Positions 228 through 58,588 of a stretch of DNA of 64,000 bases are shown here, in pieces; position 1 is the first letter of the stretch, and the number at the start of each line of letters is the position of its first letter. Origin of the DNA: Trichoplax adhaerens (Eukaryota; Animalia; Placozoa); assembly GCF_000150275.1 (NCBI RefSeq), contig NW_002060947.1, positions 2,841,740 to 2,905,739 on the forward strand. The letters are read 5' to 3'. The position numbers and the translations under genes are program-made. Below the pieces are notes generated by a model. It saw nothing but the letters and a program-made list of their open reading frames with translations. It made no database searches and was not told where the DNA came from.

Positions 228-2783
228 ATCGATGACGACTTCATCGCTGCTTATCAGTACCATTATGGAACGAATACGAATCAACAGGAACCTACTACAG
301 GAGTCATTACAGCTGCAAATATGGCTCCTCCTACCGCTGAAGCTGCTAAGGTAATATAGCAACCTTTCACATTCCAGCTTCAGCCAGGGACTACTAAAAG
401 AAAGAGATGGGACAGGCAGGAAACGGTTGTTCGCTATACTAATAATATGAAGGCTGATTATTTTACTGGTCATTTCAACTGTGTCGTATGTCTGTAAACG
501 GTACACTGTACTGTCTGCGATTGACGTCCAAATTAGCTGCTATTAGCCTACTAAGTTGGTTTTGTGCATTATGTTATACGGGTTTCATCGGTAGCATATA
601 GTAGAATGATCGAAAAAATGATAAGCCTTCACATTATTTTTACAGTGTGATCGTTTCCTTTCCCATCTCTTTCTTTTTAGTAGTCCCTGCTTGTACATAT
701 TGTAAGCTGAACAAAATTCATTTTGTGTTAAAATCTTGTTAGCCTATCGTAAATGCTTCAAATGCGATTCCCAAGCAAAAGCAGAAAGGGGAAGAATCAA
801 AAGATAGAAAATCTCAACCTGAAGGTGATATCATGCAATAAAGCTTAATCAGTCACAACTAGCTAAGTCCTTACCTACAGTTATAACATGGAATAGAATA
901 GTACAATTTAATGTTTACTATCAACCTATATTTCTTCGTGCTAAGAAGTCGCGAAATCATATGCATATTGATTGACTTAAGAATGGTAATCTTTCAATTA
1001 TAGGCTGGTTTGATGTCGATGAAACTAAAAATACGAACGTTTATGTCTCAGGTTCTATATTGATATACGAGATCATAAATTATTAAATAGCTTTTAAAGA
1101 ATAAGATTAAATTAATAGCATCTTAGGGTATTATGGAGAAAAGCCAGTTTTGGTATCACCAGTCTAAGCGTGTAGTTATAGTAAGAAAATTTTCGCCTTG
1201 TAATTAATTTGATGTTAGGCTTACCTATGGACACTACAGAAGAAGAATTCGTAGAATTAATGAGTAAATGTGGTATAATTATGCAGGACGATGACACTAG
1301 TATGTAAATATATATTCGTAAAGAAAAGTTATTATCATCTATAATGAAAGTGTTAGATTGACGGTGGATGTCGGTTTATCGTTATTCATAATAAAAATAG
1401 AAGAATTCAAGGTGAAACTTTATAGGGATACAGATGGGCAATTGAAGGGTGACGGACGATGCTGCTACTTGAAGGTATACTCGATAACGAACATTGAATT
1501 GCTGATTTACGCTTACTGTAGTTAAAAACTATTCTAAAAATCCGTTCGTGTCATGGTAATTTGCGCAAACAGCTCCTAATCAGTCGTTCGAATAACATTT
1601 GCTCAAGCAGCGATTCCTATTTCGATCCTAGGTCGAGTCAGTAGACCTCGCTTTACAAATTCTTGATGGTTCCTTATTTAAAGACAGCACAATTAATGTT
1701 GAGAGGGTAAAGTACCTACTAATGCATGTCAGAATGTGAAGATATATAGCTAAATAGACGTTAGAGACCTCCATTTGGGAGATGCAACCAATTCGAATTA
1801 AAGTATTTAATTTCTCCTGTTGTCTATCAAAAGTTAAACGTGATATTGAATCTTTTAGGCGATGTTTACGTTAAAAGGACGGTATGACCCATCGCTGCGA
1901 AAAAAGAAGAAAAACACGAAAAAGAGAAAGAGAAAAACACAGGAAAAGTAATTCACTGCCATACATATTAGAGTATACCATTTGAAAAAGTTTCATAATA
2001 TGTTACCTATTATCTTTATCAAGGTTACTTTCATGGAATGAAAGTAAATCAGAAAAGCGTTCCAAACTTGATAAGGTTTTGATTGTTAAAAATATTTTTC
2101 ATCCGGATGAATTTGAGGTAAATTTGCTAGCTTTCTTGCAGTCTATGATCGTTTATGGGTTGTAGTTTATAAGATAGTGGTATTAATCTTCAGCACCACC
2201 ATCTGCGAATGTTTTTAATAGAAGGATCCTACATATATAACAGAATTAAAAAGCTCTGTAAAGGAAGAGTGTGAAGCCAAGTTTGGACCTATCAAGAAGA
2301 TAATAATATTTGATGTAAGCTGTAAAATGCGTGCTATGATATCGTGCGATACAGCACTGTAAGATTTTACAAATATTGTATGCACTTGTTTGTATGTCAA
2401 TATACTTTCTGGATTATAATGCTGCATTGGATATTGTTTTTATAGAGACATCCAGAGGGAGTAATTTCGATAACTTTTGCAAATCCAGAAGATCGTGATA
2501 AGTGTCTCGAGGTTATCATTGTTTGTTATATTTGGTATTTTTAGTTAACGGAGATCTGTTGTATCATTATGCTATATCGGTTTTTTGCTCGCCGTAATTA
2601 TTGCACAAGTATGATATTGAACTTATTTGGTCCCAGGTAATGCATGGGCGATACTTTGCGAAGAGGAAACTGCATGCTGAAAAGTGGGATGGCTTTACTA
2701 ATTATCAAATTGAAGAGACGGACATGGAAAGGGAAGAACGTATAAAGAAGTGGGAGGCGTACATCGAGGAAGATAACGCTTAA
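228..2783 (+). CDS. HTATSF1: HIV Tat-specific factor 1 (Tat-SF1/Cus2) U2 snRNP factor, RRM + UHM; 5' exons lie upstream of the window
   Basis: GT-AG exons in consistent phase: 228-350, 743-824, 1004-1051, 1219-1299, 1401-1474, 1632-1706, 1859-1947, 2024-2117, 2222-2314, 2446-2511, 2637-2783 (TAA). Translation gives IDDDFIAAYQYHYG, GWFDVDETKNTNVYVSGLP, KCGIIM, VKLYRDTDGQLKGDGRCCYLK, VESVDLALQILDG, RHPEGV, GRYFAKRKLHAEKWDG and ERIKKWEAY, all characteristic Tat-SF1 motifs. Confidence 0.95.
385..689. mobile_element. MITE with long terminal inverted repeats (family A, copy 1) in an HTATSF1 intron
   Basis: Left end CAGGGACTACTAAAAGAAAGAGATGGGA matches the reverse complement of the right end except for a 1-nt indel. 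Imperfect inverted similarity continues for about 90 bp. No coding capacity. 7-bp flanks CTTCAGC/CTTGTAC match only partly. Confidence 0.85.
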
Positions 2784-5700
2784 ATATATTTAGTGAAGGT
2801 ACTTTTTTAATCTTCTATATTAAGTCATGGAATAATTGTTATCCTCAATAATAATTTAAACGCATGTTCTGCTGCTTGTACTATTAATTTTCGATCGCGT
2901 AAGACACGAACAATCGTCTAACGATTATATTAGTAAATTCATGCCAGTCTGTCTTCATGAAATCGATTTCAACCTTAAGCCATACATAGCAGATGGGTTA
3001 ATTAGGGATTTTTGGACTATTACTCTAATATCAATATTGAGATATATATTTTTACGGATTAAATCCCCTATTTGAATGCTTATAGAAATTTAGTTAACTG
3101 TAAGCTGTATTAATATAAGCTATTTGTATTACTGCCGTCAATTCTAGGTATGAATCGGATGTGCGAATACGTTGGTTGGTACATGCTGTGAAAATGGGAT
3201 TGCCACTTGATAGTATCGATTTTTCAATTTTATAATTTAATTTGTAGTGCAAATTTACTGTGTGATGTGATAACATCAACACGTAGGTTGTACATTCAAT
3301 ACCAAGGATGCGAAACGATTTGTTCTTATCGATTGTAATAGCAAGGTCTGTTGGTATTTTATGAGACGCTTGCAAAGAGCTTGCATGTTCTATCAAATGA
3401 AGTTATAAGCCTCTATTATGCAATAAAAATTCATACACCTCCGGTATAAGTTTTCATTGCGTGTACACAATCTATTTCTGTAGTTTGTCTTATACGAATT
3501 TCAGTAATTATTACTGACTGTATGATAATTATATTAATTATAATTATTGAATAAAATTTACTATGATCTTATTAAAATAATTTTTAAGTAAGGCTGATCA
3601 AAACGCCGTATCGATATTCGTTTACTGGTTCATATTTACTCTTTACTAAGTAAAAAATGAGAATACGAGTTATTTGTCCAACAGAAAGCTTTTAAATTTA
3701 ATGTACACAACATTTTCCCAATTTATGGTATCAAATATAAATTCAGATGTTACACTGAAATTTATTTTTCTCAGGTTTTAATGCAAATTAACTCCGTTAT
3801 TTATGTTATAATGATCCAGTAGATATCGAAATTTTAGTTCGGTGCTTATATATTCTATAATTTGCTGATGAGTTATGTCCTTATGAATTACTCTTGGTTT
3901 TATAATGTCTGATTTTATCAAATTTATGATACTAGTCTCACTTAGATGGGTTGCAACTAAAGCATCATCGCAGGATTACTTACGCCATATCATGTAACAC
4001 ATGTATGCGTATACAAATACTTAAGATAGAGAAGACCTTAAAGATATTTGTTTTATGGATACTTTTTTTATGTTCATTATCTAAAATCTGAAATATTAAA
4101 CGATCACCTCAAATCCCTAATGAAATTAGGCCGTACAGAATTAGCTATTAATGATCTAATATATACAATTTTTTCAAGGTATCATGTTTGACAATATACT
4201 CATAATACTCGTATTAGTTGACAAATCAGTTATAATTATTAGTATGTGTAGTGATACTCTTCAATTTAGAATCTATGCTTAGAAATGTTTTTTATTCAGT
4301 TTTCTTCCGTACACATGTTTTTGCCTCTTATAGGAAATTTATCGTTTATCAAAGCCCATTCATTTAAAAGTAACTTCTCCGAGTTTTTGCAAACATCATA
4401 CTATTCAAATGCTGATATCACTATCTGGATAAAATTTAATAGAATTAAAAGTTTTAACATAATCAAAAAGATTTTTAAAGTTGGTGCACAATTTAATTAA
4501 CAATATTCTAGTAACCTATCATAACATGTAGCTATTTTCTTACTGATGTTTTAAAAAATATTATAGCAGCACTATCCTAGATTTCACTCGAATACAAAAA
4601 GCATGGAAATAGATTTACTGGTATTAAAAAACATCTAAAAAGGGGGTAAAGTATCTAACGTCATATCAATATATTCTGAATCTACCTATTGTATATTGCA
4701 TAGGTATCCAGCATGCCACGATTTGCTAGTATACAATATATTGCATTATATTACGAAAAGGACGCAGTAGGGATAGGCTACTGACTAATAAATAGAGGTA
4801 CAAGATACTAAAAAGCTTTAATGCATTTCTCTATATATATAATCCAGATTTTGGATGCTAAATATCTCATCGAAAGTATAACAGTTGGCATTATTACCTA
4901 CGATAACATATTAGAGGCTAAAAGAAAACATCAGCTTCGTATTAAATTTTTAAGTAGCCAGTGTATGTACGTGATCGATTGTGCCTGAACTGCATCATAG
5001 ATATTACAAATCCGCTACAATCTATTTAATGTACCAACTTATAGACTCAAAAATACGGATATTTGTATCTCAGCTATGATTAAATTAAATTTAAGCATTG
5101 TTTGTAAAATAGATGAATAATGGCATATTAGTAATTTTAATGGTTACTGATAAAAGGTGAAAATATTAGAGTTTTTACGTCCTTGAAACAGAAGATCTCG
5201 TAGGACTAAAACCGAATATATTGATACAAGCTAATTGTATAAATAACTTTGATAAAATCAGAATTTGCAGTAATGCTGCAATAGCTATTATGAATCATTT
5301 AAGATACTTTATATTAGATGTTAAGGTAGCATGGTAAGAAGTACATTTCCAGATAGAGTAGCAGTAAAAAAAATCTAAATTTCAATTGAAGCTGTTATTA
5401 GCCAACTATAAATCTTGATATGGTACAAAATTCTGATAGTAAAGGCTTTCAAGGGCTTAGAGATATAAATAAGTTTTACTTACATATAAGTAATGTTAAT
5501 ATGAATTTCACTTCATACTGTAATTGGTCTCTAATAAACTTTTTGTAAATCTGAAATTTTTAAAGATATTATAAATCGCCGCTTCTAAGCTTTATTGTCG
5601 GATTCTTTAAATACGAATAAAAGTCCTCATAAACTACATCTGATAATAGCTAGAGAGAAAAATGGTTTCGCTACGAAATATTGGAAATATTTTAAAATTG

Positions 5701-5926
5701 TATAAATAAATGGTATAAAACGTAAAAAATATAGCAGATAATTTTGTTGATGCGCCGTACAAAGTAACCGTTATAAGTTTACATTTCCATATATGATTTT
5801 GAAACCTCAGTTTATGGACCTATTTATGAATGTATACTTTTTATAACAGTGTATGAGGTATCATGTTTATAATCCTGACTATCGCAGATAATTTTTGTTT
5901 CTGAGGTATTATTGCTATAGTACGTG

Positions 5927-6207
5927 CAGGGATTACTCGAAAGAAGAGAAAGGGACGGGACACAGCCGAAAGCTGCAAGAATAAGTTGGCTGATCATTTC
6001 AAAATACGTTACGGTTGTAACCGTACACCGTACTGTGCAAAACCAACCTGGCATCTAATTTGAAGCACGATTGTGTACAGTATAGGGTACGATTACCGAT
6101 GGTCAATGCAGTTGCAATGACCAGCAGAAAAGTCGGCCAACTCATCGCTAGTACAGTATAGTCAACGATCGTGTCCTGTCCCTTTCTTTTATTTCGAGTA
6201 GTCCCGG
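5927..6207. mobile_element. MITE (family A-related, copy 2)
   Basis: 37-bp TIRs match 32/37 (CAGGGATTACTCGAAAGAAGAGAAAGGGACGGGACAC). Flanks GTACGTG/GTATGTG match 6/7, suggesting a 7-bp TSD. Internal segments resemble copy 1. Confidence 0.8.
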
Positions 6208-7875
6208 GTATGTGATGTTTACCTAATTGATACTTAATATCTTATATTTAAAGATATTCAGAGTTAATGAGTAACAGCATGACGGAATTAAAGAAGTTTC
6301 ATAGTCTTGTAATAAAGTCGACGACCTATATTAGTGTATTTGAACATTGAAGGAATTAATGATGCGTTACCATACCCTACTACTTGAACAGGTATAACTT
6401 TCCCATCTATCTATCACTTATCATGATACTATATATAATATGCTAGGACTATGCCTTAATATCAAAATTAATGATAATAAGAAAAATTTGAGCTAGTATC
6501 CAATCGCTATCAATTTTGAGATAATAACCAGCTCAACCGATTTATTCTATTCTCTAGAAGTTATCATATTTTAACTATACTTTTGGTGATTGTTAGTCAA
6601 GATAATACACTTATAATTTATGTATATGTCGAATTATGCCTACAGTATTTGCCAGCCTATGAAGAGGCGATCTAGGTATAAAATAGAACCTATTTTGTAA
6701 GATGATAACAATCATCTGATTTAAGTTCTCTTTATGATAAATTGGTCAGAGAATTAGATAAAATAGAAAGCTAAATGTGCAGGCAAACTGAACGATTCTA
6801 TTAGTTAGATGAAGCGCCATATATATGTTAGTTAATTCATTCTGGAGATAACAATCCTTGGTATTCAGTTTTCGTATTATACTGTAGTTTAATACTGTAT
6901 TATTGCTATCATTTGCTGCATCGCGCATGGTTGTATGGTAGTGTTACTGAAAGGACATCGTAGTTACGATTCTTGGTAAATTCTGTAAACTTTCTTGATT
7001 TGCTTGCGAGTAAATCAACGGATCATTTATTTTGATACGGATATAACTATTATTTATTTTCGTGCATGTTTATCGATTATAATTATCATTATTTTTATAT
7101 AAGATTTCTTAGTGTTAGAATTCTTTGCGTGAAGAAGTTTGAATTTTTGCTGCGCAATTTTACAGTGTTTCCATGACATTTGTAATCACATGACAAATCG
7201 GCCGTTTCTATTGGCTATTCATTTCATATGCCTTGTTGGTCATTGTGAATGATTATTATTGAACAATATTCAAATTAAATCGTGCTTCCTTTTATTGGTA
7301 AAAGCATTGCAGCGCTACGTAAGAAACCATTATGCGGATATCCTATCAAATCAGTTGACTCCAATTTAATCTACGCAATAGACACTCACAGCTACACAAC
7401 TAAATATCTTCATACGAATAATCATACATACAGTATATAAAAATAGATACCAGCAACAATATAAATATCCAGAATATTTTCATTAGCGTTAATATTGTGT
7501 AAGCATCAGAGACATCACCATCGCTGGGTGCACCATTTCGGTTTCGTTGTTGATGTCCCAGTAAATTTGAAATACGTTTAGCTATCCAAAAGTAAGTCTA
7601 TGATAACATGTTGAGAATACATGATATCTAATTAATTATATATATAACTGAATAATTTTCCAACATGCATGTCTACATATTAAAATGTTGATTAATACGT
7701 ACTGGAAATTTGGATATTTTATGAATTAACTATGTGTGAGGTTACACTTTACTTTACCATTGCCGAGATAGGTTTACTGGCTGTACCGTAATAATAATAT
7801 GATTTAACAGCAGTGAAATATGTTATTACTTAATTACAGTAATGCCTTAATCGGAAATCGCTAGCCCAGGAAGTC

Positions 7876-8412
7876 GTACAGTAGTTACAGTATTATTCGA
7901 ATATTTTACGAATAATTTACATACAGTACAGTACTGTAGATGTTTCATTACTATACTGTACTGTACAGTACAGTACAGTACTTTTACAGTTACTAACTGA
8001 ATACTGAACAGTACTGCACGCTGTACAGTACATACCAGTCTCCTGCATTTGACTAAGATATTTTACCCATTTAAAATTTCTACCAAACTTTTACACTCTA
8101 CAGTACTGTACTCTGTACAGTATCTACGAATTTAGAAACTCAGTAATACAGTACAGTACTGTACAGTACTGGGCACTGAGTGTACAGTACAGTACAGTAC
8201 AGTACTGTACAGCACCGTAAAGAGAAATCGAAAGTCAATAGTTAGACGTAGCAACTAGTACAGTACAGTACTGTACTGCAGTATTATATTAGTATACTGT
8301 AGCACATGTTCAATCGGTCTTCCAGTGATTTGATTGTATCACATTTTCGTAAATAAAGGAAATAAATTGATAGTAAATAATGATTGCACATATGTAACTA
8401 CTGTATACAGTA
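7876..8412. repeat. (GTAC[A/T])n palindromic pentamer array in the 5' region of the AHR gene
   Basis: Dense runs such as TGTACAGTACAGTACAGTACAGTACTGTACAG (about 8181-8212) and TACTGTACTGTACAGTACAGTACAGTAC. Confidence 0.85.
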
Positions 8413-10000: not shown

Positions 10001-13000
10001 ATGTTTGGCCGTCGAAAGCGAAGACACGTAAAACATAGGTGGGTGATAAGATAGCTAGCTCAAATGCGTAATTTTTACAAATCAATGTAGTGCCGTACTC
10101 TATAGCACTAGTATGAACTACAGTATACATATAATTTGCAGTCCATGACAGTAGATTGTTCTAGATTAGAAAATAACTATTGGTCCATTGCTGTTAATTT
10201 CTTCAATTACTTCCTTAAGTATTTGTCTAGGGTTATTATATTGGTTATGACCTTTGAAGTACAGTAAATGCTATCACAATAGGTCGTAGTAGATATGCAA
10301 CGACAAATGTTGCAACATTACCAAATACAGTATCTTTACGTAACGTTACCATTGCTAATCTATATGATCGGAGTTGCCTTAAATAAATTATTTTTATCAA
10401 TATGTAGCATATTAGCTTCAACAAATCCGTCAAAACGCCATCGGGATAAACTTAACTGCGAATTAGATAATCTAACCAAGTTATTACCTTGTAATAATGG
10501 CAAAATTGCAAAACTGGACAAATTGTCAATTCTTCGGCTATCAGTTAGTTATCTCAGAGCGAAGACTTTGCTAAAACGTAAGTCATAAAAAGTAACAGAT
10601 GAATACATTATTTATGTGCACTGTTAAGATATAAATTTTGATACCATATTGTGCAACCTCATAATATTATACGATACCAATTATGAAATTACTATTCCTT
10701 TAATAAGAATTCTTATCGTGATGCTTTGTTGACGCAAATTTTAAATATTTAACCTTAGTATTTTCGCTTAAGCTTGCATTTTTAGATTTTACAATTATGC
10801 ATATTCATATTTTAGTGTGCTAAATCGTTTTAGCACGATAGTACATATACGAGCATAGCACTACAAGATGCATATAATTTCATATAATAAAAAAATTCTC
10901 GTACGTATTTCAGTATGTAGCTCATATTCAACAAATGCACTATACCATATCTATAGTAGTCAATATATGAAATGCGACACAGTTAATAAATAAAAAATAC
11001 ATTAGTACTTATGCTGACGGTAAATACAAATAATCATTTTCAAATAGTTAAAATCAAAAATTTTGTAATGCTTCCGAATAAAACCATACTGTGTTTAATT
11101 ACTGTTGTTATCATAAGATGATCGAGTTTCTCCAGCTAAGAGCCCAAAAATTAGTTGTTGTCCTAGACTGTAAACGCTGGCAGCTCATAAACGCTACTAT
11201 GTAGATCGAATTCCATTAAATTAAAATAAAAACAAATACTGACACTCAAGGGTGTACCGTAAGTTTAAAAGCGTACTTAATATATATCTACGTAATTGCT
11301 GTATATTCCTGATTTCACCGGACATAGCGATCGCAGTTTCTTGAAAAATTTTAAAAGTATATAAATATATGGGTATATACCTTATATAAAATAGCTTTAT
11401 AATTTATGGAATGTTCGTAATATTTCATAAAGGATTTAGACTGTATGCAAAGTTTTAAATCCAAATATTAATTACTTACAAGGTGTGAATCAAATTGCAG
11501 ATATTAGCGCGGATTCAGGAGGTGAAGGCAGTACGAGCAGTAGTTCAGAAAGTAGCTCATGCAGCTCATATCAAAATAGTACGAATAGCTCGAGTAAATC
11601 CTCTAGTGGTTTACCGGAAGGAGAATTATTGATGGAGGTTATAAATTTTAATATGCTTATTATAAAATAAAAGCCAGTATGACGTGATCAGTTTCGTGTT
11701 TTAATTAACTTTGATAAAGACATATAATAATTTTATATACTATATATATGAGCTATCGAATATTGTTACGGTCAACAATATATTGTGTAGTACACGCAGA
11801 ATAGCTTGCTACTCGTTATAATATATGATTTGCTAAATAACACTAATTTCAGATCTTAATTAATCTTATTAGGCACTCAACGGGTTTATAATTCTAGTAA
11901 CAGTAGACGGTGAAATATTTTTTGTTTCATCATCTGTTTCAAAATTTTTAGGTTTAAATCAGGCAAGTATAAATATTTAAATTATTGTATGATTAAATTT
12001 GCTGTTTGTAAGCGCTTTTAAACTTATCGTAAGTAATCAGGATTTGCTTTTACTTAACATTTAAAATCTAAGGTTGATATTATGCATCACAGTATCTATG
12101 ACTATTTGCACCATAAAGACAGTCCAATGTTTCAAAATCAACTTTTAGCAGCATGTCAACATGCTCAAATTCACCATAATAATCATCGCGTAAGTTAGCA
12201 GTTGAAATTACAACATGTAGCAACTGAGGTGTATGATTAATTGCCCTCGATTAATTTTATATTTATTTGTTACGGATTGGAATTTCATTTATTAGACAAA
12301 TCGAATTACGAACTCACGCAATTTATCGAGGCGCATACTCATTTACAGTACGTTCGGCATTAATATCTAGTGATCCTATAATGTATAGCAATTACAACAG
12401 TAAAAATTATGTCATTAATTGAACTATGTGTCATAATCAATCTAGGAAATACTACCATATTTTCTTGCGTTTGTCAAATGAAATGTGTCTTACCTTCACG
12501 AAATGATTATAAGGTGTATCTGCGTTACAGAATCTCATAATTTGTATCTGGTAGTACTTACTTCGCTATTTCTTGGTAATTATTGGAATAAATTGAGTTT
12601 GCATTTTATGTTTTTAGGCAATTCATATTCATGGAAAAATAAAAAAGCTATATACCGAAAATAAATGGACGCTATTTGCTACATGCACTGCCATAATGCC
12701 TGATTCCTTATCGATTGGGCTTTATCCGAAAAACGTTATCTTTCAATCCAAACATACAATTGACTTTACTTTTCTTGAAGTAGATGATATGTAAGTGACA
12801 TAATTTAAATATGTAATTAATATTATAGTTTGTTTTAAAATTTTTACATTAATTTCGTCCGTATGCAATCATTAACTGTGAGATTTAGTGTACTCATGTG
12901 CTTCTCTACGAAGGTTAATGAAAGTCTTAGGATTCACTAGAAAGGAGCTGATAGGCACTTCTGCCTATAAATTGATTCATCAAGGAGATGTCAATTACAT

Positions 13001-15521: not shown

Positions 15522-15912
15522 AGTACAGCAGTCCTCCTTTACACAGTACTGTACTCAGCTGCCTTTTACCATTCTCAACAACGATGTTTCGTTAATTACA
15601 CAGTGTACTGTACAGTACTGTACTGGAAGTACAGTATGTACTGTAGGGGTGACTTTGTAAAGGTTATACAGTACTGTACTGTCAGGGAATTCTAAGACTA
15701 ATACTAAGGTAAGTGTTAGAAGTCTCTGGTACTGTACTGTACTGTACAGTGTACAGTACTGTACTGTAATCTACGGTACAATGTCATCATGCATCATAAC
15801 TACTGTACCGTACTGTCCGTACTGTACACTGTACACTGTACAGGACAGCACTTGGACTGAAACGTACAGTACAGTACAATACAAATACGACTACTGTACA
15901 GTACTGTACACT
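15522..15912. repeat. (GTAC[A/T])n array immediately upstream of the CEP43 start codon
   Basis: For example GTACTGTACTGTACTGTACAGTGTACAGTACTGTACTG at 15729-15766. The array ends about 70 bp before the ATG at 15979. Confidence 0.85.
15683..15728. mobile_element. 46-bp micro-MITE with a 7-bp target-site duplication
   Basis: CAGGGAATTCTAAGACT...AGTGTTAGAAGTCTCTG (17-bp TIR, 14/17). GTACTGT flanks both sides (15676-15682 and 15729-15735). Confidence 0.65.
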
Positions 15913-15978
15913 CAGTGTAATGAATACAACATTTTTAAAAGTTCGTTAGTGAGCTGAACTGGGAGAACGCATCTTATT

Positions 15979-18900
15979 ATGGCGAACGACGAAGATACAG
16001 AGTTGCGCGACTTGGTCGCACAAATTTTAGAACGAAAAGGAGTCCTAGGGAAAATAAGGGTAAACTTGAACAATTTAAGGTTATGGAGATATACTTTAAG
16101 GATTAATACTAAGAATTCGTGCGTACTCGTATACATTGTATCTGTTATTATAGGCGCAAATGAGAGCAAATGTATTTCTAGCATTGGAGGAACATGACAG
16201 CAAGGAAGTCAGTCAAATAAATATTACCGGTTTACAATAATTTAAGGCCTCTACATTGCGATAAAATATTTATTTCAAGAAGGGAATTTTTCCCTCTCTG
16301 TTAAATCAAAGACAATGTCTACTGTATTTTGATTGTATGATAGTATAACTGTACGTGCTTCCAAGGGTCGTACGAGTACATGCTACCATACAGTATTATA
16401 CTGTACGTATATTGTGTTTTAAAGATTAGAACTAAATGTAAACTTCGTATATCGTATAATTTACAGTACATGGTATTTAACCAAGTAACGCTTTATTCAT
16501 CTAGAATCAGTCTCGAAGTGTTAACCCCAAATTGCGAAGTTTTCTATCAACAGCTGATGGTGTGTAAAATTATAGGCTACAAAGTCACTGCATACTAATT
16601 TAATTTAATTTATTTACTAAATCCGACACTATTACTGCTGTATTCATTCTACACTTTTCATACTACTGCACACCTAAATTTTTGAGTCCAGTGTGAGTTC
16701 AACCGCTTTTAATCGACTTTATAATGTTCTCATTTCATACCTTATCCAGTCGCTATACTAAGTCACACTAAAATCATTTCATCTCTTATAGGTAGACTTA
16801 CCTTCCAATTAGTTCGTGAATTATTCGATTTTTTTGAATTGGAGTATACTCAGATAGTTTTGCAACCGGAAGCCAATTTAGTAAGTCACAGCATATCAAT
16901 AAATTTTCAACAGCATAGGATTTTAAGCTGAATGGGAATCGATTTATTTTTTCTTTCAATCTGCATTGAAATTAGACCGAACAACACTTTAGTAGCCGAG
17001 AGATGATCGCTCGAGAATTAAATATTATTGACAGTGAGCCTTCCTCTGAGCCCTTGATAACGAAGGTCATCAGACGAATACCTGAATCACCTATTTCACC
17101 TAAACGAACCAGTTCTATTACTGACGTATGTATGATTATATATTAGAAGACTTCATGATTTATATCCGAATGTAGATATATGGGTGTTATTGTAACAATA
17201 TAATTGATGTGCTGATTGCAGGGTTTTACAAACAGTAAAACAATATTATACAGTAATGCACATCCAGTTAGAATTAGACACGGTAATATTAAGGCTATAG
17301 CTATAACCTTATCTGTTTAGGATCTTTCAATGGATCAAATTGCAGATGCTAGGAGAAGATTCGAACACTACGATAAGGCAATAAAAGAATTAATATTTTA
17401 TGTGTATGATTTTACCATAATTTAAATTATTTATAAATGTCGTATACTTACGCCAGAGAGGCTGCGCCCCAATTGTAGATATGATTTCGTTACATTTATA
17501 TTATAGATGTGTGATATCATCACGTACTATCAAGAAGCTGTTTGCTCTTTTTCAATACATAATAAAATACTTAGCATTTATTATCTGTTACGCTAACGAT
17601 AAAGTAATTTTCCAATGATGACAGGACGGAAGTGGATCAATTGATAAAAACGAATTGCGTTCACTATTTGTAGACCTCTTTCCTCATTTTAACAGGTTAG
17701 CAGAAAATATTAATTTGTATATTTCATGATTACCCTGCATAATCTACTTCATTTAACTTTTAAAATGTTTTTCATTACAAAATGAATTTCAGTCACATGT
17801 TGGAGAGATATGTTTCTGACGAATTCACGGCAACCGATAACGATTTTAGTAGCTGTATGTTGCTTTAAATGTATTATTGCATGCAGCTGTAGTTGGTTAA
17901 TAATATAATTATAATCTTAATACTAACCATAAAGTAATTTGGACATATTTCTCTTTCTTGAACTTTTCTTGTTGGATTAAAATTTATCCGTTTTTCTGAC
18001 TTGAATATTTACAGCTATAGAATTTAACGAATTTTTAAGTATGTACAAAAGGCTGTTTATACTATGCAAAGCTAAGGTTGGTTATATGGACTTTGACTTT
18101 GCTTTATGATTCATCTGACCCAATTCTTCATAATATTTGAAAGATATCGCAAGACGTTGCAGATATAGTTGGGCCATTATCACCAAACAAGGGTCGCTTT
18201 GGGATGTTAGAAATGGGCGTAGAGGTAGGTTTTACTGCAAGTGCTGCGTAATATCTTTACGAATGTTAAGTCATTAGAAGTGAAGCAGCTAAATATGATG
18301 TAAATTTTTTTAATGGATATCCAATCTTGCAATAAATTACTTATAAATCAAGAAACAGAAATCCCTTGATAACGCTAAAATGCCTAATGAAACGAGTCGT
18401 ATGCATGATGAAGTAGTTGCACCTGGGATTAGTAACAAAGGAGAAGCTGAATTTATTTCCAAAGATCCCCCAAGTTCAAGGTAATTCGATTTTGCATGAT
18501 ATTGGCATTGCAAATATACATGATTGATATGAGGTCATTGTAATTAAATTTACACTTTGATTTTTCATACACAGCGAAGAATCTGGCACTAAGAGAAGTA
18601 AAGTTTAAGCATATCCAATTGATCCTTCGTAATATGTTCATACGTAATGTGTTCAATACGATGATATTAAAGGTGATACCCATGAATATGAAGAGCCCGC
18701 TATTGATGGTAAGAGCAGAAATGCTGGCTCTGCGTTTACGCTGCCTGCGCTACCTACGAAAAATAATCAAGTTGGAGGTTTGTATATCTACTAGTTGTAT
18801 TAGTGTAGTAGCAATTCTTCGGAGATATATCATTAAATCCGTGATTATATGTACCTATATTCACATATCTATGTAACAGAGGTAAATGCTGATTGGTCTG

Positions 18901-19512
18901 ACTTATCTGATATAGACAGAAAAATCAACCAACTCGGATTTGGTAGGTGACGATTTATATTTATTACTTAGTTTCGAAAACTACCTTCAAGTTAATCTGA
19001 TTTCATATCCATGTAGATGTCCCGAATGACGGAGATGATTATGAAGATGATTTCGTTCCTTCCAGGTACTGAATTGTGTAGTTATAGTATCGATTGATGC
19101 TGACACGCATGTATCGACGGTATTAAAAGGTATCTTCATATTTTAGTTCGAATACAAGTAAGTCCCTTGAAGATAATAGTATCGCTGAAGAAATTGAAGA
19201 AGATATCACGGAAGGCAGTCAAGACAGTAAAGTTAGTGGTGATTGTAATCAACCTGATGTACAGATTACTGCATTGTTCGTTATTTTGATTATATATATG
19301 CGATGTCAAATTTGTCATAGCATGCCAACGATAGTGAATACCTCACAGCACATGATGCTTCGTTTGCTAGAAAGTTGAAGTAGATTAACGATGGGATGAC
19401 GTTGTAATCAATTTGACTCTTTACTTTGTAGAATATTTCAACTACGGATCAAACAGTTACTCCTACACCAGATGACCTAGATTATATGGAGAGCGCCATT
19501 TTATCTAATTAG
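15979..19512 (+). CDS. CEP43: Centrosomal protein CEP43/FGFR1OP (FOP/TON1 family, LisH) with an internal EF-hand pair
   Basis: Exons 15979-16059, 16154-16207, 16505-16559, 16792-16880, 16976-17125, 17321-17377 (GC donor), 17625-17695, 17793-17854, 18015-18076, 18144-18224, 18353-18480, 18575-18597, 18673-18777, 18880-18942, 19017-19065, 19147-19231, 19432-19512. FOP motifs: EDTELRDLVAQILERKGVLGKIRAQMRANVFLALEE, LisH LVRELFDFFELEYT, YEDDF, SIAEEIEED and C-terminal DYME. Central exons are less certain. Confidence 0.88.
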
Positions 19513-21548
19513 AAAGCATTTGAATCAGTTGTGTCTGTTATCAACTGAACTGTAAACTAGTACGAGACGTTATACATATAGCCCAAATGGTTTCGGAATT
19601 ACATCGTTTTTTGTAAATTTTGGTGTAAACTTATTGTAATAAATTTCGAGTTCACTTGAGAAGCAGTTCTTGTTATTATAATTATTGTTGAACTGCTAAG
19701 ATTATCCTTAATTTTATATGATTTATAGAATCATATTTATCAAGTAGTTTATATCCTTCGAATTGTCTGCATGGATTATTATTTTCATTTTTTAATAGAA
19801 ATTGTTTTCAATAGATAAACTGTAATACTGTAATAGAATTGTTTATCTCATTACCTCAGCTGTTAGGTTATTTTTCGATTTTCATCTGATGGACAACATT
19901 CTAATTTGTCGATAGCAGTTTTCTCTGATTGTTATTAGGTGCACATGCAAATACTCTTATACTAGTAGTTCGCCTTCTTTGGGTGATATTTATTATTCAT
20001 ACCTAACAAACCGTGTATCAGAAATGCATTTTTTGATGAACAAATATGGTATCCATCATATAAGTTCTTGGGTATATTGAAAACAATTAGCGACTGTTCG
20101 GCATTACTAATACCTAATGTTGAAGCTGGAAATTAGTGATTGAGGAAACCATACGTATAATTATTGTAAATGTTTGTATTTGTTATCGATAATAAAGCAT
20201 TTGCTAGTAGAATCAACAGTTTCTAGAAATAAAGCTTTTACACATTTATGGACCTAACTACCGAAACCCGGCTTCTGATACGTACTTTAAATGATTAGAA
20301 ACAATTAGTTTTACCAGTTCTACGGGTATTAAGGACTACTTTATTTTAGATTTTAGGTTGTGTAGTCTCTGATAGAGTGTTCAAATCATGGAGTATAATT
20401 TCTTTCCATAATTATAATGGCACACGTTAGATTGTACGTTTTATTTCATGCATAAGTAACGAAAAATAGTTACCCCATATCCGGATTTTAATATAATACT
20501 AGCATGAATCTGCTACAATGACGAAGATATTACACACCGTTGATGGCATTGTATAATACTAGTTGATAGAACACAGTATACGCATTCTCTGGCTATTGGG
20601 GTCAATAATAAGGAAGAAATTATAGATAGATTCTTGCTTAAAGATCATAATTACCTGATTCTTTCAACCGAGTTTAGAATGAAAGGCATCAATTTCTATC
20701 CTCAATTTAGTTATTTTTTCATAAGCAAAAAACATTCAGTACTACATGCTATCTTGTGACCGAGAATTGGTTGCATTTTAATAGTGAAATCTGCAATAGA
20801 GTTATAATACTGTATACCATTACGAAATGGATTTTATGACCATATTATAACAATCGTACTTCAATAACGTCACTTAATAGTTTATATCGTATCGGCAGCA
20901 ATATTACTGTAGTAAAACTAATTAGGGTTTTAATTATTGTAATAATAACACCTTAATAGTTGAAGTAATAATAAAATTAATAATAATACATCATGATAAC
21001 TGTAAGACAGAAAATGAAATATCGGTGATAATATTACCCTAATGCATATTGAATATAACATTGCAAACATGTGTTAACTTTATTCTTAAAGGTCAAAAAT
21101 ACTCCAACATACGAGTAAGTAGACGTCAACAGAAGCAACAGTGCAAAAAAAATTGCGCTCAATCTGACATCATATCTATTAGATTAAACTATTTTAGTAA
21201 TAGATAATACAAGCCCTCTCTGATTTCATGCGCGTCGGTTTGTACTGTATAAATATTTAATAATATTAAATTATCATGAAATATAGAAATCAAATACGTA
21301 AACGAGAATAAGAATAGTGATAGTTAAAGGAGCATCATGAAAATCTCATAACTAACAGGTTATAGGCTAAACGCTGGTATTACCCTGATGAATTGCATGT
21401 GGCTGATGTTAGAGTAATACCAGATGACGTAAACCATACCCGAAGTGAATTTTATTGTGAAAAATTTTCAAAAGGTATGTGAATAAAACTGAATTAAGGG
21501 TATCGTACCTATCGATAATTTAGCACTTTCAAAAGTGATTCAAGTGAA

Positions 21549-33100: not shown

Positions 33101-33391
33101 GGTTACAATGCTAACTCTGATCATTTGAAACAGATAATTTAAAATGATTTTCAAAGCGTAGCTGCTTTCGTTAACGTAAACTGTAAACGATAAATTAATA
33201 ATTATATATACATATACTGTACATATATTTTATTCACAGTATGGGTTATACACTAAGGCGTACATTATTCTGTACAGTACAACATGATGTAAGCATTAAC
33301 GACAGCTTTTCGAGAAAGAATGAAACTTTACCAGTTGACGGATTCCAGTGAATCTAGCAAATCTGTGAAGGCTGCTGCACCTCTGGAGCAT
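30189..33391 (-). CDS. PDHA1: Pyruvate dehydrogenase E1 alpha subunit, mitochondrial
   Basis: Exons 33391-33332, 32903-32841, 32328-32155, 31928-31802, 31655-31564, 31469-31371, 31247-31098, 31008-30937, 30857-30790, 30675-30567, 30359-30189. Motifs [35 protein letters not shown] and [16 protein letters not shown], plus a basic N-terminal presequence. Confidence 0.97.
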
Positions 33392-33592: not shown

Positions 33593-33750
33593 CAGTACTG
33601 TACACTGTACATTACAGTACTGTACACTGTACATTACAGTACTGTACACTGTACGGTACAGTAGCTACAGTACTGTACTGTACTGTATACAGTACTGTAG
33701 GCACGTGTACCGTACTCGTACAGTACAGTATATTGTACTGTACAATTGTA
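33593..33750. repeat. GTAC-based array upstream of PDHA1, including a 22-bp tandem repeat x3
   Basis: CAGTACTGTACACTGTACATTA occurs three times at 33593-33658 (third copy imperfect), followed by GTAC[A/T] runs. Confidence 0.85.
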
Positions 33751-33779
33751 AAGCACTCGAACGTCTCAAATGATACTAT

Positions 33780-33943
33780 AGTGTACAGACACGCGATACA
33801 GCTGAAATGACCGATAAAATAATCAGCTTCTAACTTCATTAGTATAGCGAAACAACCGTTTCTTGTCGTCCCGTCTCCGTCGAGGTGAGAAAAAACTTGT
33901 TTTTCTTACCTCTACGCCCGTCTCTTTCTTTTACTAGTCCCTG
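33780..33943 (-). mobile_element. Single arm of a family A MITE (copy 3)
   Basis: After removing a nested 39-bp insertion, the reverse complement aligns to copy 1 at 385 to about 500. The first 29 nt match 27/29, and shared blocks include GAAACGGTTG, TTCGCTATACTAAT, GCTGATTATTTTA and GGTCATTTCA. No partner TIR found. Confidence 0.85.
33878..33916. mobile_element. 39-bp hairpin insertion with a perfect 8-bp target duplication
   Basis: CGTCGAGGTGAGAAAAA-ACTTG-TTTTTCTTACCTCTACG (arms 15/17) is flanked by CCCGTCTC at 33870-33877 and 33917-33924. It is absent from the homologous position of MITE copy 1. Confidence 0.75.
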
Positions 33944-33950
33944 GTACTGT

Positions 33951-34540
33951 CATAGACTGCAGTACTAGAAGAAGACCTGGACTGATCACCCCCTCAGACA
34001 GACGGACTTTTCTTAGCAAATGAGGCTGTCAATATCAAAAAATGACTACTTAGGTAATATTGCATAGAATTCTATGATCTGTTACATTGATAATCATCGA
34101 CTCTAATATACTGTATATTAAAAAAAATTTTGTATCGCGTGCGCAACCATTATCCCAACCAACCAAATCCTCTCTACTGTAAATTGTATAAAGTTGATAG
34201 GACGGACGGATACTTGGATTACTACAGATATTTTCGCCAGCAAAGTCAGCGGGTCTAAACTCGCACAGTACAGTAGTTATACAGTATATACAGTACTGTA
34301 TAAGATCATAAACGCTATTTACTGTACTGTAAATTAGTACCAGTGATTTAGAAAACAGATACGGAAGATCCATATTAATTAAGAAAACATCGGCCAATTC
34401 AAAATCGGCCGCCGACTGCATACTAAAGTAGTGCCATAACGAAGTGTTTGGCATAATATTTTGACGAGATGAGGCCTGAAATGTCCGCCCGTCCAAGAGT
34501 GATCAGTTTAGGTCTTCTATGGTACTAAAGGTAGTCTATG
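33951..34540. mobile_element. 590-bp non-autonomous TIR element (family B)
   Basis: Left end CATAGACTGC...AGAAGACCTGGACTGATCAC...GACAGACGGAC matches the reverse complement of the right end CATAGACTAC...AGAAGACCTAAACTGATCAC...GACGGGCGGAC over about 60 bp. No clear TSD. Confidence 0.7.
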
Positions 34541-37500
34541 CAGTGACGCCGGTGATACTGTCCGACATACAGTACTGTACATTAGCGCTAGTAGAGCCTT
34601 ATGGAGACGTACACGGATTACAGTTAATAACATTTTTTAAACATACTGTATACAGTACTAGGAAACGGTGCAAAAACGCAGAATACTGCTGTATAAGCAA
34701 CCAACAACTAAGATTTCACTAACAGTACTGTCCTACAGTACAGCGGAGTAACGTGTTAAGGAAGTTATCGACAAATATTATTATTATAGGCACTACTGTA
34801 CAATATTAGTTTTGCATTGGTAATATAATAAACAGGATTAAATTGTCTTATCAGTGCAGTGCAAAGCCTTTTTTTACTTTACTTTACACCGCAACATGCA
34901 CTTGAATAAGTAATTATGTAAGTTATAAATTACGTCATGGACTACAAGATATATCGGTACATCTAGCAGTCCTTACTTACGTTAATGCAACTCTGAATGT
35001 AGGGAATTAGCCCAGTAATAGCCATGCTGTAACATAGAGGGTATCTTAAATTAGAATAAATAGAGCCCTGAATTTTTTATTTGGTACTTCTATAGTAATA
35101 CTGAACAATGATTAATTATTTAAAGAATATAAAAGCTGCAGTGTGGAATTAATATTGATAGTTAATATAAACAAGCTTGCTTTAATTTTCTTATTTCCTA
35201 TAACAAATATTATTTACTACATGGGTCACGACATTTTGTATCCGTTGAATCGTAAAACAATAGCAAGCAATAATAGCCGCCCGGTTCATTGAAAAATGAT
35301 ATTTATTCGTTTACATGGCCTAATTATCAGTTCAATCTTCGTGGAGTACCGTACAATCTGGCTATAATTCTACGGGTATAATAAATTTTAATTCGATTGA
35401 ATAACAGTGGTGATGTCATCACATTGATTATTTTGTCTTTACAGATTCATTTTCTACATAAATTAGACTGGGGTAAATAACTACCGCGGCATAAATTGAT
35501 CTAATAGCCACATTACACTCGAATAAAGTGCAAGAAAATGTTATAATTTATTTGAGAGTTACCGCTTCTAGACGAGGGGTTCACAATTACTATCTTGAAA
35601 ACAGACATTGGCTTTTACTTTCTGTGTGAAAGTGCGATTATATTGATGTTGTAGTGATAACTACCAGCGTTACACGATCCATTTCTAAATTGCTGACGAT
35701 AGGAGTATACTGTAGTATGTGATACATCACTTTTAAACGGATGGCATGTCACCTTGCGAATTATTCGAGATGGCAAAATCTCAACACGAATACAAGTACT
35801 CTTATTACTTGTATATGCATATTGATACTGACTTAATTTGTGATAAAAATAAAATATTAATGAATAAAATAATAAACAAAGACGCTAATCTGAATGTAGT
35901 AAAAAGGTTGCTTTGTTTGTAGGCTTGCATTGATAATGCTTATTTAATACTCTAGGATCCTTCCTGTTGAATGACGTTGCTATCATCAAACTAAATGTTT
36001 TTTTATGTTTTTCCGGCTAATGAAATTGATAGTAAATCATCAAAGGATAGAAGATTTACTGAGATTCCCTTTGGTAAATATGTAAACAAGATGCAATTAT
36101 GGTACTCGTAACGGAAAATTTATAAATATTTTAAGGCAGTTTTTAGCAATAATTAAACGATGCTAAATTTAATATGTGGAGCAATAACGTAACTTTGGGC
36201 AAGGAAAGTGTGTTGGGTAGTAGAGCTTAGTTGGATAGCTAAATAAACTACGGTAAAATAAAATATTCGTCTTTTTTGGTATAACACTACTACCTTAACC
36301 TACTCTGAAATACCGCTAGTTATACTTGTGTTTGTAACGATTGATTCCTTTTCTTCTTGCACTATGCATCGATTGTTGTTGTTGTTTTCATATTCGTCAT
36401 TATATTTACGATATTTTATTACCGTTATTACTAATAATATCGTCAACAGGATATGCAATACGAATAATATGACCAATTTGCTAATAAAATTAAAAGAACC
36501 ATGCCTACAGCATTACATAAACTGGCATAAATGTATCATGATTTAAATCGGAGGACATAAAACAAGCGGCAAATGTATATCAAAGGATTAGAGCTATAAT
36601 TTTCCTATATGCTATAAATTGCAGTAGTTATTAGGGACTGCATAGGTCGGCATTTTAACCTAATCGGTTATTGAGTTGACAAACTTAACTAACAGATGGT
36701 AGATTAATTTACTTCAAGAAATAAATTATTTGGGAAACACATAAATGCAGTACCCAAAATTCTTTGATATCTTTACTGTAATAAGAGATTACCCAAGTTT
36801 ACGTTGTAAAGCTACAAAATCGTTTCGTTGTTTTTAATACAGTCGTACTTATTGTATTGGAGCATACAGGAAGTGCTAAAGTTGTAAAATATTATTAGTG
36901 CTAGTTAGAGTATATGAGAGTCTTTGCGCATAACGTCATGTTATTGGTTACTCGAAGAATTCTAACGGATATCGAGATGTGACGGAAGTTCATTATTGTC
37001 ATTTAGTTGTTATTGCGATTAAATTTTCAATAAAAAGCCAGCATTGTCTACTTTTGTTGCTATAATGCAGATGCAATAGATGACCTTGTTCTTTTGCACA
37101 TAAGAAGATTACGATAAAAATATTTCTTAATGTAAAGGATACAAAATAGAATGTTTGGCTTTGTTTTGTTTTCTAAATTAGAAATTAAAACGATAATCTA
37201 TACGTTCTGTCATTTTCTATTGGCAATAATTACGTTTACATGTATTAATTCTAAGCCCAAAACGCTATTTTTAGTTACTACTCTGACGCAATGTACGGCA
37301 CTCTGATCACTAGCAGATTATGTTTTCAACTTAGGTTATTATTAATCTTTTTACGATCAATTGTTATCATTGTCTATGGGAAATTTTAAAATTTTAAAAA
37401 TCAGCAATGGTAGGAATAATAAATCAATACATATATAATCCATAGTTTCTCAACAGAAAATTGCTATTCTATACCCTTAAAAATTTATTGCCTGCAAGAT

Positions 37501-58426: not shown

Positions 58427-58588
58427 TGTACCGTACAGTACTGTACAGTACCCAGTACAGTACGGTAGAGAAGTTGAATACTGTACTGCACAGTGTACAG
58501 TGTAAGTATTCTAACCACTACGCAATCGCACATTTCCGAATATACTGTACAATACTGTACTGTAGTACAAATGTACCATACTGTACTG
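58427..58588. repeat. (GTAC[A/T])n array immediately upstream of YRDC
   Basis: CTGTACCGTACAGTACTGTACAGTACCCAGTACAGTACGG and similar runs, ending about 50 bp before the ATG at 58641. Confidence 0.8.

Follow-up and report, generated by a model that had tools for sequence, protein, structure and literature searches.

A MITE Family with 7-bp TSDs and a Galileo-Like Target near Promoter Pentamer Arrays of Trichoplax adhaerens

Introduction

In a stretch of 64,000 nucleotides of Trichoplax adhaerens DNA (assembly GCF_000150275.1, contig NW_002060947.1, positions 2,841,740 to 2,905,739; termed the window below and numbered from its first letter), pentamer arrays of the form (GTAC[A/T])n lie 5' of several genes, and MITEs with similar ends lie beside or within some of these arrays. 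The question raised by this locus is whether the arrays attract the transposon family or were seeded by it, both of which had been proposed in a preliminary description of the window. The family, its target and its enrichment near arrays were borne out by the present analysis, and the seeding was not. The explanation favoured here, with a probability of roughly 0.7, is that older promoter arrays acted as dense targets for a decayed, Galileo-like family with 7-bp TSDs.

Arrays and Neighbouring Genes

Genes were identified exon by exon with Pfam and from the gene calls of the Trichoplax sp. H2 record. Four (GTAC[A/T])n clusters, the runs of which have a period of 5 in TRF, were located 5' of CEP43, PDHA1, YRDC and a bHLH-PAS (AHR-like) gene. 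The arrays and the genes concerned are as follows:

7926-8277: (GTACW)n cluster 1, 5' of the bHLH-PAS (AHR-like) gene, with about 2 kb between it and the bHLH exon
15546-15910: (GTACW)n cluster 2, separated by 70 bp from the downstream ATG of CEP43/FOP
33595-33744: (GTACW)n cluster 3, 200-350 bp 5' of the PDH E1-alpha CDS start
34566-34585: short remnant of an array, beyond the elements E1 and E2 as seen from cluster 3
58428-58586: (GTACW)n cluster 4, upstream of YrdC
10283-10585, plus strand: bHLH exon of the bHLH-PAS (AHR-like) gene (Pfam; Trichoplax sp. H2 gene calls)
15981, plus strand: ATG of CEP43/FOP (Pfam; Trichoplax sp. H2 gene calls)
about 33392, minus strand: CDS start of PDH E1 alpha, PDHA1 (Pfam; Trichoplax sp. 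H2 gene calls)
from 59452, plus strand: exons of YrdC (Pfam)

The reported presence of arrays 5' of these four genes, and their absence before the two single-exon EHD genes (minus strand) and the FYVE_2/C2 Slp-like gene, were confirmed by the listing of runs; runs of at least two GTAC[A/T] units were absent from 15910-33272 and from 34581-58433. The reported distance of less than 450 bp upstream holds for CEP43 (70 bp) and PDHA1 (200-350 bp). For YRDC, the distance from cluster 4 to the first Pfam-supported exon is about 870 bp.

Genome-wide, 15,107 exact matches to (GTACW)3 were counted, versus 5 for the control. The choice of A or T is random between neighbouring units (same W in 131 adjacent pairs, different W in 125), and the second commonest spacing in the arrays belongs to a specific 7-bp variant unit. 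The window arrays are the same as the (ACAGT)n repeats described at Trichoplax promoters in 2010 (PMC2871265): (GTACW)n is (ACAGT)n/(ACTGT)n in another frame, and tandem tracts of the pentamer ACAGT/ACTGT were found here likewise upstream of genes and associated with housekeeping genes. Wang et al. (2010, PMC2871265) placed 54% of the (ACAGT)n repeats at most 1 kb upstream of genes and related them to housekeeping genes; the repeats were tied to promoter hubs in 2025. The window arrays differ from a pure microsatellite in their random W and in the 7-bp variant unit. Written as TA+CWG, with TA+CAGTG/CACTG as the 7-bp variant, the unit with its random W resembles the excision footprints of Tc1/Sleeping Beauty (TA-CWG-TA), a likeness that amounts to consistency and bears on the origin of the arrays rather than on the 7-bp-TSD family, the target there being TA and the superfamily another one.

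Elements in the Window

The following elements and the spacer between two of them were delimited:

385-689: 305-bp MITE, ends CAGGGACT...AGTCCCTG, inverted arms of about 80 bp
5927-6207: 281-bp MITE of the same superfamily, 35-nt arms, 89% complementary
15683-15728: 46-bp micro-element inside array cluster 2, consisting of two termini alone (15/20 complementary)
33772-33943, minus strand: E1, truncated copy of the 305-bp family, homologous to family positions 1-124
33878-33916: unrelated 39-bp hairpin element nested in E1, read directly
33944-33950: lone GTACTGT heptamer that separates E1 (ending at 33943) from E2 (starting at 33951)
33951-34540: E2, 590-bp element, ends CATAGACT...AGTCTATG, arms of about 62 bp at 73%

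The termini described as common to the window elements were found as claimed (CAGGGACT, CAGGGATT, CAGGGAAT/CAGAGACT and CATAGACT). Of the GTAC- or GTA-containing 7-bp flanks that had been reported, those of the element at 5927 (GTACGTG at 5920-5926, GTATGTG at 6208-6214) and of the element at 15683 (perfect TSD GTACTGT at 15676-15682 and 15729-15735) stood, as did the GTACTGT spacer. No intact TSD could be upheld at 385 or for E2: the flanks of 385-689 (CTTCAGC and CTTGTAC) match at 4/7 positions, the TSD being decayed and not clean, and the right flank of E2 is CAGTGAC, so that E2 has no TSD. An intact TSD is absent from two of the five window elements. The hairpin in E1 is bounded by an 8-bp TSD, CCCGTCTC, at 33870-33877 and 33917-33924.

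When the element at 15683-15728 was removed in silico together with one GTACTGT, GTAC spacings of 5,5,5,5,7,5,5 were obtained and the in-phase array was restored; this element entered a pre-existing array. The single heptamer at 33944-33950 is abutted by both E1 and E2, and the pair lies within array-like DNA, with the remnant at 34566-34585 beyond it. No family terminus was found inside cluster 1 or cluster 4. Internal GTAC seeds, which had been described for the larger MITEs, are not a feature of the family: the family consensus at that place is GGTACACTATACTGT, and GTAC occurs in positions 15-70 of 21% of elements versus 19% of background, that is, without enrichment.

Family Size, TSD and Target

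The elements belong to one large, old MITE superfamily with CA[G/T]GGACT termini. Exact family termini numbered at least 895 (control 31) in one count and at least about 1,300 (roughly 1,350) in all, to which hundreds of micro-derivatives are added; matches to a 14-nt terminus numbered 585 (control 31), and micro-elements 161 (control 3). The ends vary as CAGGG, CATGG, CATAG, CAGAG and CAAGG.

The length of the TSD was determined from 17 elements, in which flank matches were obtained at k=7 alone (four perfect, nine with at most one mismatch) and none at k=4-6 or 8-10, as for a single transposon family with a true 7-bp TSD. The proposed TSD logo was built from the flanks of 66 non-redundant termini, and 84 further distinct flanks were tallied by hand. 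The logo is palindromic and carries information at positions -7 to -1 only, with none at -8; the target is a weak palindrome, RYANTRY, the best form of which is GTANTAC. The heptamer was repeated in the hand tally (-7 R 67%, -6 Y 80%, -2 R 86%, -1 Y 73%).

The reading of the micro-elements as P-type excision footprints of 17+17 nt is not supported: the listed sizes climb steadily, without a maximum at 34 bp, up to 46 bp, the limit of the search; the fitting cases are one 34-bp element (L039) and one 22-bp, one-ended element (L056).

Superfamily Assignment

Judged by the length of its TSD, the consensus of its target and its CANRG-type termini, the family appears to resemble P-superfamily transposons of the Galileo/1360 branch most closely. 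The termini of P elements follow the rule CANRG, to which all five end variants conform, and the 7-bp TSD falls within the 7-8 bp of that superfamily. For Galileo, a 7-bp TSD with the consensus GTANTAC has been described (PMC4168063), and the palindromic target found here agrees with it, the preference being weak. The likeness extends to ends that start with CA, to many deleted derivatives that consist of two TIRs only and to elements placed at the ends of other elements. The Trichoplax family differs from Galileo/1360 of Drosophila in its placozoan host, in its arms (about 15-80 bp versus 0.6-1.2 kb), in its weaker target preference (GTA or TAC half-sites in 7-15% of flanks) and in having no detectable THAP-RNase H transposase. 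No genome candidates were obtained for the P-type domains PF21787, PF12017 and PF21789 in a search that was run without a positive control, only three short THAP-like frames were returned by a THAP search of the genome, and no long element was found within 20 loci of 8 kb. Since no P-type transposase was found, the superfamily call is a structural one; of the proposed P/Galileo reading, the TSD, the CANRG-type ends and the GTANTAC-best palindrome stand, and no P/THAP9-type transposase was detected.

Membership in another superfamily (Mutator, as in the EDTA label, hAT or an undescribed one), with a convergent likeness to Galileo, is accordingly a possibility that we take seriously while thinking it the less probable one. 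It would fit the missing P transposase, the four MULE-domain fragments in the genome, the arms of about 80 bp, which are reminiscent of long-TIR families, and the CAGGG ends, which are also compatible with the hAT rule YARNG. Against it stand the target consensus, which is that of Galileo, and the TSD of 7 bp, versus 8 bp for hAT and 9-10 bp (8-11) for Mutator: no matching flanks of 8, 9 or 10 bp were found, and position -8 is uninformative. The four MULE matches (PF10551) lie on small contigs and at loci with neither a family terminus nor an array.

As far as the 2010 survey and the literature searched show, this family would be the first of P-like type to be described from Placozoa; no P superfamily element was listed for Trichoplax in the 2010 tblastx screen against Repbase, and MITEs were called rare in the genome (PMC2871265).

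Insertion near Arrays

GTACWGTAC was found at most 50 bp outside the terminus in 10.6% of cases (7/66, at seven independent loci), versus 1.2% of random positions, an 8.7-fold enrichment (P = 1.7e-5). Expectations were derived from a uniform model (1.2%) and from a 7-mer PWM of non-array sites (2.7-3.0%). The heptamer preference accounts for about one quarter to one third of the 8.7-fold excess, and the 7/66 termini exceed the PWM expectation with P = 0.004, which drops to about P = 0.08 when intergenic confinement is added as an estimate that roughly doubles the expectation. About 89% of termini lie more than 50 bp, and about 80% more than 300 bp, from any array. In the scan of distances between GTACW units and termini, no one phase stood out sharply, and a hand tally showed gaps of 1 and of 2 to be equally common.

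It is conceivable, at rather long odds, that no sequence targeting is involved and that arrays and elements co-occur through shared survival near promoters, in the accessible non-coding DNA of a compact genome. The PWM covers about 2.3-fold of the 8.7-fold excess, and the remainder is non-significant by the intergenic estimate; the heptamer preference is nevertheless strong and was replicated in two samples, and insertions into arrays use fitting heptamers such as GTACTGT, GTACAAT and ACTGTAT.

Because the element at 15683 entered an existing array and arrays far outnumber elements, the attraction proposed earlier is supported, and seeding is not. The tracts are full of the preferred palindrome of the family and therefore look like its landing sites, not its products. 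According to the favoured explanation, the (GTAC[A/T])n tracts, which are the pentamer arrays already known from the vicinity of placozoan promoters and are conserved at the orthologous promoters of further placozoans, would predate the insertions, and the elements (about 20 to 600 bp) would be decayed, non-autonomous members of one cut-and-paste superfamily. The family transposase, undetectable in this assembly, would have made 7-bp staggered cuts at RYANTRY, at best GTANTAC. Every GTACTGT or ACAGTAC fits this heptamer, so the arrays would be dense clusters of good sites; in addition, the promoter chromatin around them is probably open, and they would hence receive more than their fair share of insertions.

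Relation to Published Promoter Motifs

A TIR motif at placozoan promoter loop anchors, mentioned in the preliminary description, is in print: in Kim et al. (2025, PMC12221973), a motif of loop anchors and housekeeping (GP1) promoters is located in the TIR of an EDTA-annotated, placozoan-wide 'Mutator', and both domestication and targeted integration are stated as hypotheses for the link between transposon and promoter. That an element broke an existing array favours targeted integration over a motif brought in by the transposon.

That 'Mutator' and the present family may be the same; both are transposon families common to placozoans and enriched at housekeeping promoters (GP1 in PMC12221973). 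In that paper, the label comes from EDTA, a structure-based caller; the family described here differs from the label in its 7-bp TSD, its Galileo-like target and the lack of a link to a MULE transposase. If the two are identical, the label should be revised, together with the arguments that depend on it. The idea that EDTA calls palindromic arrays Mutator was tried as well, and strict rules gave one TIR+TSD-like pair in four arrays; it is not the main explanation.

Co-option of the family, by which its terminal or subterminal sequence (e.g., GACGGGAC or an ACGG-rich motif) would be the loop-anchor/insulation motif of 2025 and elements and arrays together would form a working promoter architecture, is compatible with the favoured explanation and not exclusive of it, and is regarded as doubtful. 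The location of the published motif in a 'Mutator' TIR is in its favour, as is a 2025 preprint in which a 'repeating ACGG' motif is assigned to a transposable element and set apart from ACAGT. ACGG was found in positions 15-70 of 39% of elements versus 8% of background, and is repeated within the window in E1 and E2 only. The correspondence with the published motif is, however, presumed rather than taken from its letters, and most housekeeping arrays here have no element.

The link of arrays to promoters (2010, PMC2871265) and that of a transposon to promoters (2025, PMC12221973) had thus been published, and novelty is modest, as the 2025 paper already reports a promoter transposon. Added here are a definition of the array-adjacent family by its 7-bp TSD, its Galileo-like target and a count of at least about 1,300 exact termini, and direct evidence on direction from the element that breaks an existing array.

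Origin of the Arrays

A self-reinforcing loop, in which the arrays would be landing pads made of excision scars, a domesticated, transposase-derived DNA-binding protein (THAP- or Tc1-like) would recognise either the GTAC arrays or the TIR motif and act as the architectural factor of placozoan promoter hubs, and the 2025 'Mutator' would be P/Galileo-like, is considered very improbable. Seeding of the arrays by the MITE family, through expansion of internal GTAC seeds or through excision scars, is largely refuted and has only a slight chance of being correct: a two-unit GTACA expansion at the internal GTAC motif of one copy (L030) and the loss of E1 homology near an internal GGTACAC motif, about 30 bp short of cluster 3, are outweighed by the excess of (GTACW)3 matches over exact termini, the two of four window arrays that have no terminus, the lack of both GTAC enrichment and an array in the family interior, the array interrupted at 15683, and the 7-bp spacers, in which TGT/ACA is predicted by GTACTGT scars and is outnumbered 45 to 1 by ACT/AGT.

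Other Placozoan Sequences and Reads

All window insertions, including the element at 15683, were present in Trichoplax sp. H2 at 99% identity and are therefore not polymorphic; within the array region, the two sequences are set apart by indels of 1, 2, 4, 5, 5, 7 and 20 bp. When a diverged orthologue of the CEP43 locus was sought a second time with EHD, only Trichoplax sp. H2 was returned. In public reads, the arrays recruited contigs genome-wide (depth about 500-fold higher), for which reason read joints there are meaningless for empty sites; the left junction at 15683 was covered by 14 nt. A metagenome scan for the TIR gave one GC-rich chance match. On a placozoan scaffold of about 20% divergence, an array was found 5' of PDHA1, and about 35 bp from it lies a one-ended remnant of 22 bp that retains an exact CAGGGACTACT end and has a perfect TSD of 7 bp.

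Gene map and GTACW arrays

The window (G+C content 31.8%) lies on contig C1410 of the 105.6-Mb Trichoplax adhaerens assembly (1,414 contigs) that was used for the genome-wide counts, and is collinear with the Trichoplax sp. H2 record NOWV01000154.1 at 99% identity. Genes were mapped exon by exon, as unspliced models, from Pfam matches on single exons and the gene calls of the H2 record.

Genes of the window (window positions; Pfam matches and H2 gene calls)
10283-10585 (+), bHLH exon of a bHLH-PAS gene, AHR-like
15981 (+), ATG of CEP43/FOP
21552-23273 and 27624-29246 (-), two single-exon EHD genes
near 33392 (-), start of the coding sequence of PDH E1 alpha (PDHA1)
47516 and 56383 (+), FYVE_2 and C2 exons of a Slp-like gene
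from 59452 (+), exons of YrdC

The tetramer GTAC occurs 331 times in the window, 85 of these in seven tight clusters. Runs of two or more GTAC[A/T] (GTACW) units, with a period of 5 according to TRF, were located as follows, together with a few short outliers.

Runs of GTACW units (window positions)
7926-8277
15546-15910
33595-33744
58428-58586

Arrays are situated 5' of the bHLH-PAS gene, CEP43 (70 bp to the ATG), PDHA1 (200-350 bp) and YrdC; as claimed in the preliminary description, the run scan of the window gave none upstream of the two EHD genes or of the Slp-like gene. The intronless EHD paralogues form a tandem (-)-strand pair without a promoter array, beside array-bearing housekeeping genes. 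Genome-wide, the forward strand has 15,107 matches to the triple unit versus 5 to the reversed control; with the window's average of roughly five matches in each cluster, this corresponds to an estimated 3,000 or so array clusters. The arrays are an already published promoter feature (Wang et al. 2010, PMC2871265): ACAGT, the same sequence read in another frame, is the dominant Trichoplax microsatellite; 54% of its copies lie ≤1 kb upstream of a gene, and it is enriched at translation genes. A motif of housekeeping promoters (GP1, n = 2,978) is tied to chromatin-loop hubs that are conserved across placozoans (Kim et al. 2025, PMC12221973).

The arrays differ from a plain microsatellite. In the arrays of the window and of the genome loci L002-L054, A or T in adjacent units was random (131 same, 125 different); the commonest GTAC spacing was 5 (307), followed by 7 (60), and the filler of the 7-bp spacing was ACT/AGT in 45 cases and TGT/ACA in 1. 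This pattern fits either scars left by a Tc1-like element or a constrained spacing of GTAC; as a consistency check, the randomly varying W and the ACT/AGT filler agree with TA+CWG and TA+CAGTG scars. Simple slippage does not fit the pattern. Between the window and H2, the CEP43 array stretch (15550-15990) differs by seven indels (1, 2, 4, 5, 5, 7 and 20 bp) and a few substitutions; six of the indels fall inside the array or at its edge, and the remaining one (2 bp) is within the micro-element at 15683. Judged from this alignment, arrays appear to turn over fast, by gain and loss of units. Contigs under a third organism label were similar to the window at the arrays only.

The CAKGGACT element family

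The elements considered here carry CA[G/T]GGACT (CAKGGACT) termini.

Elements and associated features (window positions)
385-689, 305-bp element
15683-15728, 46-bp micro-element
33772-33943 (-), E1, truncated copy of the 305-bp family
33944-33950, heptamer GTACTGT between E1 and E2
33951-34540, E2, 590-bp element
34566-34585, short array remnant

A target-site duplication (TSD) of 7 bp, as originally proposed, was borne out among 17 two-ended elements, with 4 perfect cases and 9 with ≤1 mismatch; at lengths 4-6 and 8-10 the same elements had no matching flanks. In the flanks of 66 non-redundant termini, only positions -7 to -1 carry information, and their pattern is palindromic (R, Y, A-rich, N, T-rich, R, Y); another 84 distinct flanks, tallied by hand, agree with it (-7 R 67%, -6 Y 80%, -2 R 86%, -1 Y 73%). 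Flanks started with GTA or ended with TAC in 7-15% of cases versus a background of about 2%. The best-fitting target heptamer, GTANTAC, equals the consensus of the 7-bp TSD of Galileo (PMC4168063).

For the 305-bp element, BLAST scored at least 40 copies (72-86% identity). Genome-wide, its 14-nt terminus (≤1 mismatch) was found 585 times versus 31 for the control, and the 11-nt form CA[G/T]GGACTACT, with the base at -8 also constrained, was found 895 times versus 31, from which about 1,350 exact termini follow. Since differing interiors lie behind the one shared terminus, the elements constitute a superfamily of MITEs. Micro-elements (two ends only, 18-46 bp), among them the element at 15683 and a further example at L039:960-993 (L039, a fetched locus), number 295 genome-wide versus 21 for the control, or 161 versus 3 with strict ends. 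They are palindromic, have no sequence besides the two family termini and in part group into small sequence families; they may be products of deletion, remnants of excision or mobile units in their own right. The 2010 survey, in which perfect TIRs and TSDs were required, listed one MITE family of about 20 copies (PMC2871265), and an old CAKGGACT family would be missed because of this filter.

Two elements abut across exactly one heptamer in three cases among about 70 termini (window 33943/33951, and the loci L038 and L039). The left partner at L039 is a 34-bp micro-element, the other flank of which repeats the shared heptamer at 6/7 positions. Such pairs fit the outcome expected if a TSD is re-used as a new target. 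Family termini with identical flanks are also repeated at regular intervals of about 197, 395, 93 and 220 bp (C1381:56301-57305, C1012:1439-3048, C848:248-1111, C905:1325-1785); these are MITE copies amplified into tandem satellites. The terminal repeat of E1 contains a nested hairpin element of 39 bp (33878-33916; ends CGT[C/A]GAGGT) with an 8-bp TSD, CCCGTCTC (33870-33924); this element was assigned to a different family because the TSD lengths differ.

Arrays as probable insertion targets

The association of elements with arrays is real and non-random. GTACWGTAC was present ≤50 bp outside 7 of the 66 termini (10.6%, separate loci) versus 1.2% of random positions (P = 1.7e-5), and within 300 bp the array motif was found near 19.7% of termini versus 5.1%; the random background comprised about 154 kb, with an array density of 149 per Mb versus 143 per Mb in the genome. 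A position weight matrix of the heptamer, built from non-array sites only, predicted 2.7-3.0% near arrays, so that the target sequence alone accounts for about 2.3-fold of the excess (remainder, P = 0.004). With insertions limited to intergenic DNA, the expectation is estimated to double approximately and the remainder to lose significance (about P = 0.08). An additional pull of promoters on insertions is therefore graded only as likely. A single sharp phase in the distances from GTACW units to termini was not seen in a hand tally.

In silico removal of 15683-15728 and one GTACTGT gave an unbroken array with GTAC spacings of 5,5,5,5,7,5,5, whereas in the filled site the array halves are 53 bp apart and out of phase; the array at CEP43 is thus older than the insertion. 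E1 and E2 sit between the main PDHA1 array and the short array remnant. The preliminary description had linked arrays and elements by either attraction or seeding; the 15683 insertion and the enrichment argue for attraction, with arrays as the targets. Seeding by the family is rejected: besides the older array at 15683, arrays outnumber elements by an order of magnitude, two of the four window arrays are without any element, the family consensus has no array in its interior, and the TGT/ACA spacers expected from TSD scars of the preferred heptamer are nearly absent from arrays. The internal GTAC "seed" noted earlier differs, in the copy of the window, from the family consensus GGTACACTATACTGT by a single substitution, and GTAC is not enriched inside elements.

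Superfamily assignment

Termini of the P superfamily follow the rule CANRG. The elements resemble the Galileo/1360 branch of this superfamily in TSD length, target consensus and CA-N-R-G ends, and their membership of the P superfamily is given a probability of roughly 0.55-0.6. Searches for a P transposase with three Pfam models, run without a positive control, returned 0 candidates in the genome, and no long element was found among 20 loci of 8 kb. TSDs measure 8 bp in hAT and 9-10 bp in Mutator elements, and both superfamilies are ruled out on this defining feature by the 7-bp TSD; the family terminus is also absent at the four MULE-domain fragments of the genome. Only three THAP-like frames were detected genome-wide (C1400:1043997-1044194, C1385:75166-75333 and C1410:1579873-1579980; 88, 69 and 43 aa, one with a stop), and these may be relics of a transposase or, alternatively, host THAP factors.

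The TIR caller of EDTA assigns TSDs of 7-10 bp to "Mutator" and is not known to have a P class. This caller is structure-based (PMC6913007), and repeats in Kim et al. 2025 were annotated with EDTA (PMC12221973). Two Trichoplax motifs are given in a 2025 preprint, ACAGT and a "repeating ACGG" that belongs to the transposable element of PMC12221973. ACGG was present in the subterminal part of 39% of elements versus 8% of the background; a subterminal motif of the family is GACGGGAC. Within the window, repeated ACGG is confined to E1 and E2, and it is rare in arrays, in which GTAC is followed by A or T in 84 of 91 units. From this we infer that the 2025 "Mutator" is probably the CAKGGACT-ended family.

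The arrays, and in outline the transposon link to these promoters, were known. New are the family's definition by a 7-bp TSD, a Galileo-like target and a very large number of micro-derivatives, the evidence for arrays as targets rather than products, and the probable correction of the superfamily label, which are of moderate interest to specialists in transposons and placozoan genomes and fall short of a new kind of system.

Occurrence in other placozoans

E1, E2 and the 15683 micro-element are present in H2 at 99% identity; the insertions therefore predate the split of T. adhaerens and H2. A metagenome scaffold of 9,744 bp (scaffold_303, ENA ERZ23499115) includes the EHD-PDHA1 locus of a placozoan, at about 20% divergence from T. 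adhaerens, with an array 5' of the PDHA1 exons and intervening DNA that is not alignable. About 35 bp from this array, a one-ended remnant of 22 bp retains the exact CAGGGACTACT end and is flanked by a perfect 7-bp TSD, which makes the family common to placozoans and places it again beside a PDHA1 array. The scaffold also provides a handle on a second placozoan lineage.
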